A stretch of DNA of 64,000 nt, from the NCBI GenBank assembly GCA_904063045.1, contig CAJFCJ010000002.1, positions 2,909,891-2,973,890 of the forward strand, read 5' to 3'. Numbering within the stretch: position 1 is the first letter of the stretch; each line of letters begins with the position of its first letter. The stretch comes from Dimorphilus gyrociliatus. Its lineage: Eukaryota; Animalia; Annelida. A model generated the notes under the pieces. The model made no database searches, was not told the DNA's origin, and saw nothing but the letters and a program-made list of their open reading frames with translations. Positions 2,465-19,900 of the stretch are shown here, one piece after another. A program made the translations under genes and the position numbers.

Positions 2465-4568
2465 ATGCTACAAGATATTCTAAAGTATCTTTTAGTGTTT
2501 AGTTTCCATTATCCAATAAATGGATCGGATAAATCGAATATCGTCTTCATCTTAACTGATGATCAAGATGTTGTGCTTAACGGAATGGTAATGGTCCATG
2601 ATTAGAAATTTAATATTCCTTTCTTATTAATAATATTTATTTATTACAGGAACCAATGCAATTTGCTAGAGAATTGATTGGTAAACATGGTGCAACTTTT
2701 GAAAATATGGTAGATTTATATATTCACATTTATTCTATGGTACGCGATAGGATAATAATATATATTTTCAATACCTTCAGTTTACAGTTTCTCCCCTTTG
2801 CTGTCCATCTAGAGCATCAATTCTTACTGGTAGATATGTTCATAATCATGGTGTTATTAACAATACAATAAGTGGAAATTGTAATTCTATAAAATGGCAA
2901 AAAAGAAGTGAACCTAATACATTTGCTCCATTCTTAAAAAAGTATGGATATAAGACATTTTTCGCTGGAAAATACCTAAATCAAGTAATTTAAACTAATA
3001 AACAAAAAATACCTAGTTAAGTAAAATAATATAAAATGTGTATAATAATAACTTTAGTACGGAAGGAAAGCTGTCGGTGGAACAAAGCACGTTCCACCAG
3101 GTTGGGACGAATGGAATGGTTTAAAAGGAAATTCCGTTTATTATAATTATACTTTATCCGTAAATGGTAAAAGAGAACGTCATTATGATAATTATAAAAA
3201 GGATTATTTAACAGATGTTATTGTAAGGCTTATCTCTACTTTTGAATTAATAATCCATAAAATTTGAAATGTTATTATTATAGAAACGAAGAGCTATGAA
3301 GTTTATTGATAAACAGACGAACGATAATCCTTTTTTTATGATGCTATCAACTCCATCTTGTCATGCACCCTTTACATCGGCACCCCAATATTCAAAAGAG
3401 TTTGCTAATAGAACAGCACCGAAAACAGGATCTTTCAATGTTCATGGAAAGGTAAAGAAAAACAGTTTTTTCATCTATATCTCTTTTACATTCTGCTAAT
3501 TTAAAGAACAAGCATTGGTTAATTGAACACGCAAAAACGCCAATGGGAAACACATCAATGAACTATTTACAATCAGCATTTAGAAATAGGTGGAGAACTC
3601 TTCTATCTGTAGATTCTATGATAAAAGAGCTTATAACAAACTTGGAAAACAAGCATTTCCTTGAAAATACATACATAATTTATTCATCGGACAATGGATA
3701 TCATTTGGGTGAAGTGAAGAAATTCAATTATTATTATTTTTTAGTATTTTTCTTTAAAACACACTTTAGGTCAATTTTCATTACCTACGGATAAAAGACA
3801 ACCTTACGAATTTGATATTAGAGTCCCTTTATTAATAAGAGGTCCTAGAATTAAGAAAGGAATTAAATTGAAGGTATTTTAATGGGACGAAGTGTCAAAT
3901 TTTTCACTTAACTATTTTATTTAAAAACAAATATTTCAGCATTTAGTCTCCACAATCGATCTCGCCCCTACCTTTCTTTCAATAGCTTCTGAAAAGAGAA
4001 GAGGCAATCCTTGGAAAATGGATGGTCGATCTTTGTTAAATATATTAAGACATCCGTATTCGTACAAGTATAAATACTACAATAACGTCTCAGTATGGAG
4101 AGATAGTTTATTGATTGAACATAATGGGGAATATGATATAGCTACTAAAAATTGCCCCATGATAATTGATAAGAATATGTCAGTGAGTAACTTAAATTCT
4201 ATTAAATAGAATTAGTAATATATTAATAAATTTTGTTTAAATACAACAATAGCACTGTTATCCAGAAATGAATTGTGCATGCGAAGATTCCAGAAATAAT
4301 ACCTATACATGTCTAAGGTATTTACCTTTAAGCGAAAAAGGTAATTACCTCTATTGCGAATTTAAGGATAACCAAGTTTGTATTATTAATTAACGATTAA
4401 GAAATTAAATTTAATTGGAAAACTTTTTATTTCTAGCGCAAAAAGGAGATTTACAATCTTGCTATTGATCCTGATCAATTGATTAATGAGGCTAAGAGTT
4501 CATCTAAATCGTTAATAAACTTTTTTAAATCGCTTTTAGAAACTTTAAAAGAGGAATATAAACAATGA
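2465..4568 (+). CDS. GNS: N-acetylglucosamine-6-sulfatase (multi-exon)
   Basis: ATG 2465 then a hydrophobic leader and [11 protein letters not shown]; sulfatase formylglycine motif [14 protein letters not shown]; [39 protein letters not shown]; stop TGA 4566-4568. Confidence 0.92.
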
Positions 4569-4693
4569 AAACAAGATTGCAAAATCACCATCAGTAATAC
4601 TATTCCTGTTTATAATTTATGCAATTAATAGACTTATAAATTACGTCCTTCAAACTATTTCAATTGTACTTATTATGAAATTTACATATAACC

Positions 4694-6037
4694 ATGGTTA
4701 TTTTGTTGACTTGTACTATGGCTTCGTACAGTAGAGTGAACTCTGAAAGTATTTTACAGAATATTGCCAGTTATAAAGATTGTTCCATACAAAATAAGAA
4801 AATATCAAGCATTACAGCTGGGAAGGCTAATTTCAGGTACAGAAAAGAAGACAATTCCGCTCATTGTGACGTATGCAAGGCCAAAATTACATTTTGGGAA
4901 GATATTGTAGATCCCTTTGCTGTGCACAAATCAAGTTGTGGTTATTTGAAAGAATATAGATCTAGAATAACATTAATTAAATTGCCTACTCAGAATGCAA
5001 GAGATATGATACAATCTTTCTCCAAAAGTTTTGGAATTAAACAAAAGCATTCTTATAAACCATTCTCTGACACAATTGAAGAGTCTTATAAGAATTTTCC
5101 GAAGCCTCATTTAGTGAAAAAGTTAATCGACGCTAATTTTTGGTATACGAATATAGGTGACTCATGTATATGCGTAGTCTGTAAATTGATTGCAAAAGAT
5201 TGGAATGAAGAGAAGCCTATTAATATCCATTTTAAAAAAGCAAAACACTGCAAATTTATACAAAGTTGGTATTCTGATGAAGATTGTCCCAAGTTTAACT
5301 ATACGGACACTCTTGCTAGATCTTTCACTGATAAGGAATATCATTATGTACCAGGACTATCGAAAATTGATTTAAATAATATTACCGTTAACGAAGAACT
5401 TGTTGAAGAGGATACTATAGATCATGAACCAAAGAATAGGAAATTGAAATCATTCGCCAAAAGAAGAAAGAGTTTGAACAAATTAAGGTTATCAGTTGAA
5501 TACAAAAATGAATTGGCAGCAGCAGGATTTTATTGTGACACGATATCTGAACAGAACAGACAGTATCTAGTGGTATGTTATCATTGCAAAGCACAGATAA
5601 GAACAAATAATGAACATGTAAATCCAACGATTTTTCACGCAATGTGGCATCCATTGTGTGCTTATATCATTCGAAGATGTGGTCTTAACAATGTAAGGCG
5701 ATTTGCTTCACTACCAAATTATTTAAACAAGAAAGATACGTCAGATGCTATTGCTGATACTCCACCCCAAACTGAGGAGGACTATAGGCTACGAAATGAT
5801 GCAATTAAACAAGCCAGGCGTTGCATGACTATTAAAAGTGATGGAAGGCGTTGTGTAGAAACAAGTAACATCATCAGATTGCCCTGTAGATGTTTGAAAC
5901 TTTGTGATTATTGCGCTGAAAATGTTATCTATTGCAAAGTATGCAAGCGTGTCATCTGGAGAAGAGTAAAATCTATAATTAGTCAAGTTCAAAACCAGAT
6001 TGCCGACGGTCTAGGACTGTTGGTTTGTGAGTTTTAA
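4694..6037 (+). CDS. Inhibitor-of-apoptosis-like protein, copy A (3 BIR + atypical RING, no UBA), intronless
   Basis: Three Cx2C...H...C BIR motifs (HCDVC..HKSSC; CVVC..HFKKAKHC; CYHC..HAMWHPLC) and a C-terminal Cys-rich RING-like domain. Near-identical to 8811-10394 over the BIR region. Confidence 0.85.
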   Translation: MVILLTCTMASYSRVNSESILQNIASYKDCSIQNKKISSITAGKANFRYRKEDNSAHCDVCKAKITFWEDIVDPFAVHKSSCGYLKEYRSRITLIKLPTQNARDMIQSFSKSFGIKQKHSYKPFSDTIEESYKNFPKPHLVKKLIDANFWYTNIGDSCICVVCKLIAKDWNEEKPINIHFKKAKHCKFIQSWYSDEDCPKFNYTDTLARSFTDKEYHYVPGLSKIDLNNITVNEELVEEDTIDHEPKNRKLKSFAKRRKSLNKLRLSVEYKNELAAAGFYCDTISEQNRQYLVVCYHCKAQIRTNNEHVNPTIFHAMWHPLCAYIIRRCGLNNVRRFASLPNYLNKKDTSDAIADTPPQTEEDYRLRNDAIKQARRCMTIKSDGRRCVETSNIIRLPCRCLKLCDYCAENVIYCKVCKRVIWRRVKSIISQVQNQIADGLGLLVCEF

Positions 6038-13900: not shown

Positions 13901-16900
13901 AAGCTCTTCATTGTCCAAAATGTTACCTTCAGATTCAAAGAGTAATTTCAAAATCCTATCTTCGATGGCCTTTAATTGGTTTTTGTCGGTGTTAATCTTA
14001 ACAATTAATTGATTTCTTTGTTCTTCTAGGTCGGGTCTTTCAAGAGAAACCACCTCAGACAATAACTGATCTTCTAAACCAGCTTTTGTAACTGTAAAGT
14101 TAATAATTGTCACTTTGATACAAACTTCAGGCAAATAATGAGGATTTGCCAATTTGGTTGTCATATAAAACTTAAAATTTCTATCGTAATCGATATCGCT
14201 ATCTCCTAATCTAATGAGAAGTCGACCTCCTTGCTTAAATGTTTGTTTAAGAAGAATTGGTTCAAGAGCTGGATCTAAATGTTCACCAACTTCTTCAAGA
14301 AGAACGGGCATACCGATTCTTATACAATTTTCTAACGTTCTTAAGAAATTTGAATCTGTGAGCTTGATAATTTTTAGACCGTTCATTGCCTCTTTATTCC
14401 TAATCCATCTATTGGCTTGATCTTGAGGATCAATCATCAAAGGCCACCTTCGACCTTTCGTAACTAATACTGCATTTTCAGTAGATACTTGATCTCTTGG
14501 TAGGCCATCCGAATTCCATTGCCGTATTTCAAATGGATCAGCCAAAACGTTTACTAACGTCATACCCTGGGTAACTGGTATACCTTTTTCGGCACACTTT
14601 TCAATCCAAAAGTTAACTAATTCTAATCGGTAATTAGCACTAAAGGCACCGTAGTAAGCTACACAAGCTGTTGAGACAAATACATCACCCACAACGTTTC
14701 CTAAGTCTTCTTCAAACTTTGCTACTGATTCCTCCCATCTTATCTTCTCGTCAGCAAGGGCAGTTGTCAATTTAGACGCTCTTCTCAATCTGGCTTGAGT
14801 TAGAGCCATTTGCTTTTCCAATCTTGACTTTTCCGATACGGAATCGTCATACATTTTTTGAAGTTCGGCAATTTGTTTTTCAACTGCTGCTAATTTTTCT
14901 TGCTTCTCTCGCAAAGCAGCTTGAACAACACGAAGTTCAGCTTCTGCCGCTTCCTTCTTCTGACGTTTGGGTTCAACAGTTTTGAAGACTTTTGCATAGG
15001 TATCCATGGCTCTTACCCACATACACATACTCTTACAGGCCTTAGAAACCTTTTCAACTGTTTCCGGTTGGAATTTTGGATTGTTAATGTAGACAGCCAA
15101 TTTCCTGATGATTGCAGGAGATACGTTATCTTTATCGTACCCTTTAAGGTTTTTAATCAAGTTTCCATCACCAAGGAGACGTTTAGCGCCATCCCAGTCA
15201 GTTCTAAAAGATTTTTAGTTATTAATGTCATCGCTTTTATACGGTATAAGTCAAAATGATGCTTACTTTCCACCCATTAAGATGCAAACTGCTTCCATAA
15301 CAGTTTGTACAAGTTCTGGAGGTTTTGTAAACACTCGAATTTCAGAAATATCATTCTTATCCAATGTATCAAGAGCAGCATTGGAAGCTTCAAGGGCAGG
15401 TAAAGCTTCGTCAAGATCCCTTTGGGCATCATCAGCGATAGCTTTTGTTTCACTTTCTTTCGCTTTGGCCACCGCCTCATCTTCCATAACGACTTTTCTC
15501 ACCTAGAGAAACAAGATAATCACGTAAAAGATACTGCTATTCCATTCAATAAATTTTACTTACAGTATCAGCTTTTTCTTGATCGACAACTAATTTCTCC
15601 ATAAGAGTTTCGGTATCAGCACTTTTCTTTTTCAATTCTGGTTCTAATTCAACGAGTTCCTTTTCCATATTTGTAATTAATTCATTAGTTTCGAAGATTT
15701 TAGTTAGACCATTCTTTACACGATCTCTAGCTAATTCTAGACTCCTGTGATATTTTTAATTAATATTAATATACTATATAACATTTATGAAATAATCAAG
15801 TGAATATCGTCTAATTTTACCTTTTCTTATCGCCTAACATTTGAATATAGAGATTGATCAGTTCCAAATAACTAGTTGGTGTTGTATAATAATGTCTTTT
15901 TACTTCTTTGTAGAATCTAGTAGCCATATTTTGAACAGATGTATGAATATCTACGCACATTTCCGAGACTTTGTTTTTAAGTTCGTCAGAACCGAGATCA
16001 ACTTCTTCAAAAGCTGATTTTGAAACGCCTAATAAAGCTTCTCTTGGCCATTCGGTAAACCAATCAATTGTACAGCAGTTTACTAATGACGGGAACATTC
16101 TGCACCTTGTCCTAAAAGCTGATCCCACGGGTGACATACATAGAACAACATGTAAATTGTTTCGAACTCTGTTTATACAGAAATCAAAAATAGCGTCTCT
16201 ATTTCCTTCTGCAATTCCTGCTTCTTTTGCGGCAGGTCTGCATCCAATTATCAATTTTTCATGTTCATCAGGTTCAAACAGATTTGGTACTTCTCCCGAA
16301 TTAAGAATATTATTAATATCTTCCAAAAACTCTTCAACAACAATCTGAGTATCGGTAAAGAGGAAAACTGTATGCTGATTTTCAACTCCAGCACTTGTAT
16401 ATAACTTTTTCAAGTCTTCATGGAAAGACGAATAATCGTATCCTCTACTTAGTTCAATTTGAAAGCATTTATAACCGTTCATATGACTAGCCAGTCTAGT
16501 TAAAGATTGCTTTCCACAACCTCCAACACCGACAAGTAGAGCGTTTCCTCTATCTTGCCTTATCATTCTTGCTATACGGGAAATATGTTCGACAGCGTCA
16601 AGGAAGAAGACAAGCTTCATTTCTTTGGTACTTGTTAGATTGAAATCACCCAAATACTAAAGACAAATTCACAGTGTTAACTCTTTGCAAATATTAGATA
16701 ATATATTGAACTTACATCTTCAAGAATCGATCTAACTTTTGCTAAATTTCCGGATAAATCTTCATAGACTCTATCTTGTCTATCTAATCCCATTTTGATG
16801 TAATCGCCGAATATTACTGGATTAGTGATGAATGATTCGGCTTCGACGTTCTAAAATAATTATTAAATTATGATAAGAAACAAAATATGTCATTGAGTAA

Positions 16901-19900
16901 TGGCACAGAAACAGACCTCTCCAAAGTGTTTTGATGCCATTTCACTGAGAATTGAATAGAAGAATGTTTTGTCTTCGTTGTTGACCAAACGATCGTGGAA
17001 TACTCTGAGAGCTTCATGACAGAAGAGACGGAATATTTGCTTACTCTCTCTTATAGTACTTGAATCAGCTTGTAAGATTCCTTGTACGCATTTGGATAAA
17101 TCTCTAAGATTGAAAACGTAATGAGATTTTGCAGGAGTTGGTAACAAGTCTGTAGACATCCGTTCGTAGATCTCAACTGCAGCTGCTACGATAAAATCGG
17201 TGCACTTTCTGACATCGTGTGTAAAATCGTAAAGGAAACCATTCAAAATAGCCTAAAAAATATACAAATTCATGTTAGAGGTGCATATTTATTAGTGACG
17301 TTTTGAGTTATCTTTCTCCGGTTCTTTGTCAAAGAAAGATAGTGATTAAGAGATATAATAATTTACTGTGAACATATGCTTCAGACTGTGTTCGTTTGGT
17401 GGTGGGATGCAGAACATGCTAAAATGCCGAACGAATCTGGGAGTGACAGGATTTCGACCTCCTCCAGGTGGTGCGCATGCAGCGCAAAATGTAACATCCT
17501 GCAATGGAAGAGTGTTGAGCTTACTTTTGTCATGTATCTTAGAACAGATGGAGTATTATACGGAATTGATAGAGTACTGAAGTGCCTGTAAAACCTAGCC
17601 GACAATGGCCGATTAGGTAAGCAACCTCCACACAGAGTAACATCCTTAGATAGTCAATATTTTATTAATGATAATATGTAAAGAATTAAAGCAATCGTCT
17701 ACTTACATGTATTTCTTTCCAGAAAAGTTTCTCTCTATCATACAATCCTCCATAATCTTGATACTGGCGAAGTAACTCAATAGGCGGTTGAGCACCATAA
17801 ACCTCCAGCTTTGGCATATTAAGATCATCTACGAAGATGATAACTCGTTTTCCAGCAGGCGCTCCTAATATTGTTTTTCTCTTCTTTTCCAACTTTCCCT
17901 CAATCATCTCCTGAGTTCTATTACTATTAGTTTGAGCGGAGAAATTAAGAAAAACTGGCACATAACCAGATTTCAATCCAACATCATTAAGCATTCCCCT
18001 AGCAATTACAGATTTACCAACACCAGTTCCACCGGTAAATAGAACAGATTGATGTACAGATAATAATTTCTCCATCAAAAATCCAAATCTAACAGTATCA
18101 ACAGTTGGAACTAACATTTCAAAGAATGGAATTTCCTTATTATATTTAAATGGCGTAACAGTACGTTCCCAAAGGTCCATTCTACGCATATCAAAATCTA
18201 TATAACAACTCCATAAATCTCCAACATTTGGCAACTGAAAGATGAAAAAGGAAAAAAGTTCATAACTTTTTCTTTTAAAAAAAAAGTATATAAAAAATTA
18301 AAGAAATAAGGAAAGAGATATTGTTTAAAGAGTTTACTATTAAAGACTAACACAATAATAATAGAGTTCTTTTTTCTGTTTTACTATAATGAAAAGGGAA
18401 AAATGGTTTGGAGACAATACCTTTACTACACATGTATAGATATACACAAACATAAATACAATACATATTGCTACATTCTAAACATATTACTAATGTTAAT
18501 TATGTAGCGGGTAAAGAATATTGGATAGATTCTAATTAATTTTAATATCTAATCTAAACTGGTAGATAATAAATTGTTCTTCTTTTTTTTTCTTGTTATG
18601 ATATACAATTGAATTAATAATTTTTTAGTAGTAGTTTGTTATTGTTATTGTTTTCTCTACTGTTTTATTAGATAAAGGATTCTAGTAATGAAAATTAACT
18701 AGTTAAAAATGATACAAATATTATATATATATATATATATACTGTTACTATAAATAGAACAGTATAAGATACTTGAAAAAGATTATGACATACCGTGCCA
18801 CCCTGTTAAAATATTAGCAAAAAACGTCAAAAATATTAAAATTAACAGCTAATTTGTTATAAATACTTTCTTCTAATGAATATTCATTATTTAAATATTG
18901 TTTTTTTTTGTTGTTAAACAAAATAATATTATAGAAGAACTTAATACAGAAATATTCATTTATTTAAATATAATAATTTCAAGTTAAACGTACCTTAGCG
19001 TCTCCTTGATCTTCGAAGATTTGCCTAACATACGTGTCAAAAGCGTCCCAACTATTATGAGATAAGTTACCTCCAATTGACCACATGTAGCTAAATACAA
19101 ATGTTAGGGCAACAAGTGGATGTAGTTTCCCGATATCCTGTTTCAAGTCTGGACAACCTGGCATCAAAAGTAGCGCTTCGAGAAGTTTACATAGCGTTAC
19201 GACTTTACTGATATCGACTTGGGGCATTCCCTGAGTACATTTTTTGCTAATAAATTTCAAGCCTTGTTCGACGTATTTGTCAAACATCTCCATGATATAT
19301 TCCCTAGTCTCTTGTTTGAATTTTTTACCCTTTTCAGTCATCCAAGTTTGTACGTAGGGTAGCCATCCTAATTCCTTTGAATCAATATAAACCATACCGC
19401 AACGAGAGACTGTAGCCGGACTAGCTACAGCCAAATCTTGTACTTCAAACAACATATGAATAAACGGTGTCAATTTAATACGTTCCGAATTGGCTAAGCA
19501 AAGCATTTTATTATCATCCAATACTGTATTCATATTTTCAATCCATAAAGCATCTACAGGACCGTCGCACACCACCCAGTGATGATCCTCGCTGGTATCT
19601 TGGCACGCCTCTCTTACCTTGATGGCCATTAGACCATCATGCCATTCAAGAGTCAATTTATTTATTCCACCATATAATTCATCCATAGTTATTGACTTTG
19701 GATTGAGTATATGAAGGTGAACCGGTTGATAAAAAGGATTATCCAATCCCTCATCAACTAAATTCTCAGCAGTTTTTGCGAGTGTCTGTAGAAAATTTAA
19801 ATAATTTTTAATTATTTATCCAAAGCAAAATAATTAATTCGATAATCAATATTCATAAAAAACTGGAATGGAGAATAAGAATCAATAAGGATGCTTTTAT

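Follow-up and report, generated by a model that had tools for sequence, protein, structure and literature searches.

Does one dynein heavy-chain gene of Dimorphilus gyrociliatus encode two motors by choosing between two neighbouring copies of a single exon? The question was raised by a 64,000-nucleotide stretch of its genome (the whole stretch is called the window here, and positions refer to it unless a contig is named), in which one long dynein heavy-chain gene occupies about 11.3-33.5 kb on the minus strand. Successive minus-strand exons match the Pfam families DHC_N2, AAA_6, AAA_7, AAA_lid_1/DYN_lid, AAA_8, MT, AAA_9 and Dynein_heavy, in the order of a dynein motor domain (DHC_N2, AAA1, AAA3, lids, AAA4, stalk/MT, AAA5, AAA6). 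When solved dyneins were searched with the exon that we call exon B, it matched residues 2205-2247 of human DNAH6 (8j07 chain g5) with an E value of 6e-19; human, bovine and mouse DNAH6 all gave this value, and DNAH12, DNAH7 and DNAH1 gave 3e-8 or worse. DNAH6 was also the best match among solved dyneins when exon B was taken together with its flanking exons. Judged by its best matches, in this search and in the Foldseek comparison described below, the gene is an axonemal dynein heavy chain of the DNAH6 type.

The features that concern us encode part of the AAA3 module and are listed in Table 1. The upstream exon matches positions 1-147 of Pfam AAA_7 (E value 1.6e-59), carries the P-loop GGTGVGKS and the Walker B motif FVDDLNMP, and has a phase-0 end, ...KEIH; it ends at 17707 with ...AAAGAAATACAT, followed by GTAAGT. 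Exon B falls on positions 148-181 of the same profile and encodes the end of the AAA3 large subdomain in its canonical form. The downstream exon begins at 17252 with AILNGFL, after TTTTTTAG, and its other end is joined at 16850/16917. Exon A lies between the upstream exon and exon B; the lengths of A and B, 120 and 132 nt, are both multiples of three, and both exons have the same phase, 0-0. Reading the minus strand over 17100-17900 gave exon coordinates, splice sites, open frames and translations identical to the base with those of the initial annotation.

Table 1. Exons, introns and spacer around the A/B exon pair, with positions in the window.
Feature	Positions	Strand	Description
Constitutive upstream exon	17707..18236	-	N-terminal part of AAA3 large subdomain; 5' boundary approximate
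Intron for exon A inclusion	17645..17706	-	62 nt; donor GTAAGT, acceptor TAAG
Exon A	17525..17644	-	120 nt, 40 open codons, phase 0-0; preceded by TCTAAG, followed by GTAAGC
Spacer, A donor to B acceptor	17499..17524	-	26 nt, ends TTGCAG; not a multiple of 3
Exon B	17367..17498	-	132 nt, 44 open codons, phase 0-0; followed by GTAAAT
Intron, exon B to downstream exon	17253..17366	-	114 nt; joint present in both RNA runs
Constitutive downstream exon	16917..17252	-	AAA3 small (lid) subdomain; Pfam AAA_lid_1 and DYN_lid

The RNA data came as assembled contigs of two runs, X1 (a coral metatranscriptome) and X2, and these contigs were placed on 16700-18300. A spliced X2 contig of 12,259 nt covers the upstream exon over 17706-18236 and joins 17707 to 17498, 17367 to 17252 and 16850 to 16917, that is, with exon B included and exon A skipped. 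A short X1 contig joins exon B to the downstream exon. Depth was zero over 17510-17671, the exon A region, in the contigs of both runs, a form of data that drops rare variants. B is the main form in RNA, and the contig joins confirm the exon boundaries. Exon A was likewise not found among proteins of 22-157 amino acids (searched as 22-70 and 50-157) in a collection of 5.8 billion proteins, so that this collection documents no short RNA-derived fragment containing exon A. A degenerate DNA pattern for a 13-residue stretch of exon A had no match in JGI metagenome contigs. Two exon A matches among 1.84 billion representative proteins were rejected as spurious: both are long repeat proteins whose scores add up from many weak matches. 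Another X2 contig (13,945 nt) aligns at less than 90% identity with two conserved spots of the window, 17095-17131 and 18088-18111, and probably represents the transcript of a paralogous dynein heavy chain from the same organism.

In the protein collection, the upstream exon matched one cluster, P0001, at 98% identity, and the next matches reached 79% or less. Seven runs each contributed one genomic Logan contig that encodes P0001 (L001-L007), and the cluster has a single member sequence; because one and the same sequence recurs across seven runs, we regard it as the orthologue from another organism and not as a paralogue in the same genome. Alignment to L001-L007 showed that exon A of this relative is intact, with the same 40 codons in length and frame, the acceptor TAAG/GAT and the donor AAA/GTAAGC, and that the seven contigs are identical to one another over the exon A stretch (7/7). 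The spacer of the relative is 31 nt long, as against 26 nt in the window, and neither length is a multiple of three. The introns of the two organisms are 30-60% identical and differ in length (62/67, 114/238, 66/82 and 59/66 nt in window and relative, respectively), while usable splice sites are kept in both, with AG/G acceptors and the donors GTAAGC and GTAAAT. In the intron after exon B, which spans 996-1233 of L001, the extra sequence of the relative is A/T-rich and has internal inverted repeats. Inside exon B, a run of 37 nt (17452-17488) is identical in window and relative.

We then have two orthologous copies of exon A from which selection can be read. Exon A of the window differs from that of the relative by 22 synonymous and 3 non-synonymous changes (pS 0.754, pN 0.033), exon B by 11 and 1 (pS 0.359, pN 0.010), and five constitutive exons with 1,435 codons by 668.7 and 116.3 (pS 0.741, pN 0.034). 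The pN/pS ratio is thus 0.044 for exon A and 0.028 for exon B, compared with 0.035-0.124 for the individual constitutive exons and 0.046 for these exons pooled. The differences in exon A fall on codon positions 1, 2 and 3 in the numbers 6, 1 and 18; so small a number of non-synonymous changes has a binomial probability of 3e-11, and none of 200,000 neutral simulations of 25 substitutions in exon A gave at most three amino-acid changes and no stop (p < 5e-6). Because pS and pN of exon A take the constitutive values while the introns barely align, exon A is best read as a coding exon under selection and not as a relic; these comparisons indicate that it is protein-coding and under purifying selection as strong as that on the constitutive exons. 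The initial annotation had named stops or frameshifts in orthologous copies, together with a lack of reads that include exon A, as the mark of a dead duplicate; the orthologous exon A has neither, and its pS of 0.754 stands against a pN of 0.033. Of the annotation's proposal that one gene makes two motors, the part that has exon A coding and selected is upheld, whereas no A transcript was found, the two RNA assemblies being B-only or B-compatible.

Exon B has a peculiarity of its own. Its pS of 0.359 is the lowest of 1,220 sliding 44-codon windows of the gene, the minimum elsewhere being 0.38 and the background 0.741, and in two more distant relatives without exon A, L008 and L009, the third positions of these codons change freely. 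The low synonymous divergence of exon B may reflect a splicing-control constraint tied to the choice between A and B.

How are the two exons related to each other? In a single BLASTP comparison, A and B were identical at 17 of 42 positions (about 40%) with one 4-residue gap and an E value of 5e-10, and their divergence at non-synonymous sites is pN 0.36-0.39. By this similarity A and B are homologous beyond chance, and they form a tandem duplicate inside AAA3, in agreement with the annotation, which had described two homologous phase-0 exons there. Queried by itself, exon A is too short and too divergent to match any Pfam family or any solved dynein in the PDB. With the upstream exon as query, metagenome contigs yielded 80 dynein loci; all are at most 75% identical and lack a second copy of the exon, and they were used for a survey and for a conservation profile. 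In 75 dynein loci, 15 positions of the segment reach a conservation of 80% or more; exon A keeps six of them (D1, P10, R21, R24, H25 and F26) and changes nine. It deletes P11-G14, although the PGGG glycines are invariant or nearly so in the 75 loci, G12 and G14 being invariant; an arginine is still present two residues past the gap (NRP). That exon A has no PGGG loop yet retains R-F-x-R-H-F, as annotated, was borne out both by the A-B comparison and by the 75-locus profile.

No second copy of the exon was found in any of the 75 other dynein loci surveyed, each of which has a single B-type exon. The same holds for the two more distant relatives, L008 (79% identity) and L009 (72%), which have a single B-type exon and an intron at the same place; the intron of L008 contains no A-like exon and that of L009 is too short for one. 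The L008 intron at the exon A position (about 4510-5176 of that contig) is approximately 680 nt long and filled with a tandem repeat, which reads ...KQV*ETH... in translation. Exon B itself is identical to L008 at 38 of 44 positions and to human DNAH6 at about 33 of 43, as counted by eye. Exons A and B have in common two residues that are rare elsewhere, S27 (4 of 75 loci) and M42 (4 of 65), from which we conclude that A was copied from this lineage's own exon B. Based on these comparisons, the simplest history would be a lineage-restricted tandem duplication, followed by fast change in A and then by stable purifying selection.

The distance between the two exons bears on how they could be used. 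Against a spacer of 26 nt in the window and 31 nt in the relative, nine other introns from the gene's 3' half have lengths of 59-114 nt and 50-238 nt, respectively; in each species the shortest intron measured apart from the spacer (59 and 50 nt) is about twice as long as the spacer. The annotation had judged the spacer to be about half the usual intron length, and the comparison agrees, with a short spacer in both species. The introns of this gene are in line with the median intron length of 66 bp reported for D. gyrociliatus (PMC7854359). The acceptor of exon A, TAAG (window 17645-17650; L001 707-712), has an A at -3 and no pyrimidine tract in either species, whereas the remaining nine acceptors of the gene's 3' half all read YAG (9/9); the exon A donor, GTAAGC, is strong. 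A weak acceptor of this kind fits a regulated exon, with B as the default. U12-type sites are absent at the locus, as all of its donors are GTAAGT-like, and nonsense-mediated decay cannot police the choice between A and B, because the length of each exon is a multiple of three. Comparison of the two sequences revealed no inverted repeat common to window and relative that could serve as a docking or selector element, and conserved complementary intronic sequences, the sign of competing RNA structures, were not found in them. By analogy with known cases, the layout is that of a mutually exclusive exon pair of the steric type.

Taken together, these data suggest, with a probability that we put at roughly 0.65, that this DNAH6-type inner-arm dynein gene carries a tandem alternative exon pair in which B is the default, A is a functional, translated alternative, and the two are used on an A-or-B basis. 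We infer from the layout and the selection on exon A that A is included in mRNA, that the choice is mutually exclusive and that it affects the motor. Only a minor share of transcripts would contain exon A, or its use would be confined to a cell type or stage outside those sampled. The putative branch site for exon B would lie in or abut the spacer, a few bases from A's donor, or fall inside exon A, so that U1 on the donor of A and U2 on the branch site of B would each need the same few bases and compete for them. With no more than 26 nt (31 in the relative) between the A donor and the B acceptor, joining A to B would be impossible in this model. If exon A is recognised, its donor would be spliced to the acceptor at 17252 and B skipped; if it is not, A and the spacer would be removed within an intron of 208 nt, and the weak AAG acceptor of A would make B the default.

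Four other explanations have to be weighed against this one. Exon A could be a dead, unused duplicate, a pseudo-exon that has stayed open by chance, as the want of reads or contigs over A, its failure to match Pfam or a dynein in the PDB by itself, and the loss of PGGG might suggest. A decaying duplicate, however, is excluded by constraint at saturated synonymous divergence: the 22:3 ratio of synonymous to non-synonymous changes is that of constitutive exons, frame and splice sites have been kept in two species whose adjacent introns barely align, and the neutral simulation never produced such a pattern. We therefore regard the dead duplicate as close to refuted and give it a very small chance. 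Conservation of exon A could also come from an opposite-strand gene or from a non-coding role, for example as an element that controls splicing; plus-strand open reading frames of 70-71 amino acids do overlap part of the region, and the synonymous constraint in exon B is possibly regulatory. But these frames stop at 17580 and 17591, short of spanning exon A, and the two species have no inverted repeat in common. The combination of constraint, the 6/1/18 distribution over minus-strand codon positions and the retained dynein residues (the six listed above) excludes a purely non-coding role, and the chance of this explanation is next to negligible.

The two remaining explanations accept that exon A is coding and selected. 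One is that its use is not strictly A-or-B, for instance that A and B are included together with the spacer removed, or that other boundaries are used. Double inclusion and double skipping would both be in frame and beyond the reach of nonsense-mediated decay, and the splicing partners of A are not visible in the two contig-level RNA runs. On the other hand, the spacer of 26 or 31 nt is far below the minimum of 50-59 nt among the 18 other introns of the two species, C. elegans does not excise intervening introns of comparable length (PMC4165533), double inclusion would duplicate the core strand-loop-helix of the AAA3 fold, and the major mRNA has B alone; we consider non-strict use unlikely. 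The other is that exon A is used in the relative, or was used until recently, and is silent in D. gyrociliatus, whose RNA is B-only; the selection signal sums both lineages and would accommodate this. But the pN of exon A (0.033) is not above the background (0.034) even though synonymous divergence is saturated, from which it follows that neither lineage can have been without constraint for long, and the splice sites in the window are intact. Silence in the window's species is thus quite improbable, and the reading of A and B as alternatives, with B as the default, is the one that we retain.

What would the swap change in AAA3? An AlphaFold2 model of an orthologue fragment with a B-type segment, not the A form (P0009, 308 amino acids, mean pLDDT 83), had bovine and human DNAH6 chains as its best structural matches in Foldseek. 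In this model the 44-residue segment forms a strand (166-171), a loop with PPGGGR (172-183) and a helix with R..RH (184-193), and ends with a short loop and the first half of a helix into the lid. The model identifies the swapped segment, in AAA+ terms, as the post-Walker B strand with the sensor-I loop and the next helix. In AAA1 of dynein, closure of the nucleotide site brings the sensor-I loop into contact with the next large subdomain, and the arginine finger comes from the neighbouring large subdomain (PMC4879348, PMC4047620); by analogy, this picture may carry over to AAA3. The A form would have 40 divergent residues in place of the 44 canonical ones, and the swap would span the post-Walker B strand, the PPGGGR loop (four residues shorter and without PGGG in A), the R-F-x-R-H-F helix and the connector to the lid. 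With nine of the 15 conserved positions changed, including invariant glycines, the A form may not be an active ATPase module.

Steric exon pairs of a similar build have been described in C. elegans, where the introns between egl-15 exons 5B/5A (14-nt spacer) and let-2 exons 9/10 (30 nt) are never excised, such intervening introns between mutually exclusive exons being shorter than about 40 nt (PMC4165533). All five steric clusters of this nematode, the others being bet-2, gly-5 and gly-6, have exons whose lengths are multiples of three, and exons 2/3 of mammalian alpha-tropomyosin are mentioned in the same source as a steric-interference pair (PMC4165533). The locus studied here resembles the C. 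elegans pairs in having adjacent homologous exons with lengths that are multiples of three and an intervening intron below the organism's normal length. It differs from them in that both isoforms were shown experimentally in C. elegans, whereas B alone is seen in RNA here, and in that the two copies are far more divergent (about 40% identity), A having lost a universal motif.

Earlier papers mention alternatively spliced versions of dynein motor domains (PMC3228551, PMC5100056). In particular, a mutually exclusive exon in the motor domain was predicted for the cytoplasmic dynein SmDHC1 of Schistosoma mansoni (PMC3228551; mentioned in PMC5100056), which, like the present gene, has a tandem-duplicated homologous alternative exon in a dynein heavy-chain gene. 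That gene is a cytoplasmic DHC1, however, and the present one is of the axonemal DNAH6 type; moreover, the SmDHC1 exons are identical in length, strongly homologous and bounded by split codons, whereas A and B differ by four codons, are strongly divergent and encode the end of AAA3L. DNAH6 and its Chlamydomonas counterpart DHC7 represent inner-arm dynein g (class 9-alpha, IAD5; PMC5100056), and the second exon copy sets the present gene apart from DNAH6/DHC7-type and other dyneins, given its absence from the surveyed loci. Full-text literature searches that combined mutually exclusive exons with axonemal dynein or DNAH6 returned no such report, which agrees with the annotators' impression that the arrangement had not been described for DNAH6.

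In cytoplasmic dynein, AAA3 controls the release of the motor from the microtubule. It is possible, although we offer it only tentatively, that the A form is a second DNAH6 motor limited to a cell type or sex, for example sperm, dwarf males or one ciliary band, with an AAA3 that has a shortened sensor-I-type loop and no PGGG. If this is true, one gene would give rise to two inner-arm dyneins with different regulatory gating at AAA3, and the locus would be a natural experiment on the function of the post-Walker-B loop. The swapped loop and helix lie where the dynein AAA3 module is most conserved, and an exon without PGGG that is under purifying selection as strong as that on the rest of the motor suggests that a dynein lacking this loop can still function, or can function in a different way. 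The analysis also illustrates that a comparison with a relative can reveal a silent-looking exon as functional when RNA data are thin. If the A form is expressed, the two proteins would be a natural pair of motors differing only in this element, suited to the study of AAA3 regulation in axonemal dyneins, and the diversity of inner-arm dyneins would in this case arise by exon swapping rather than by gene duplication.
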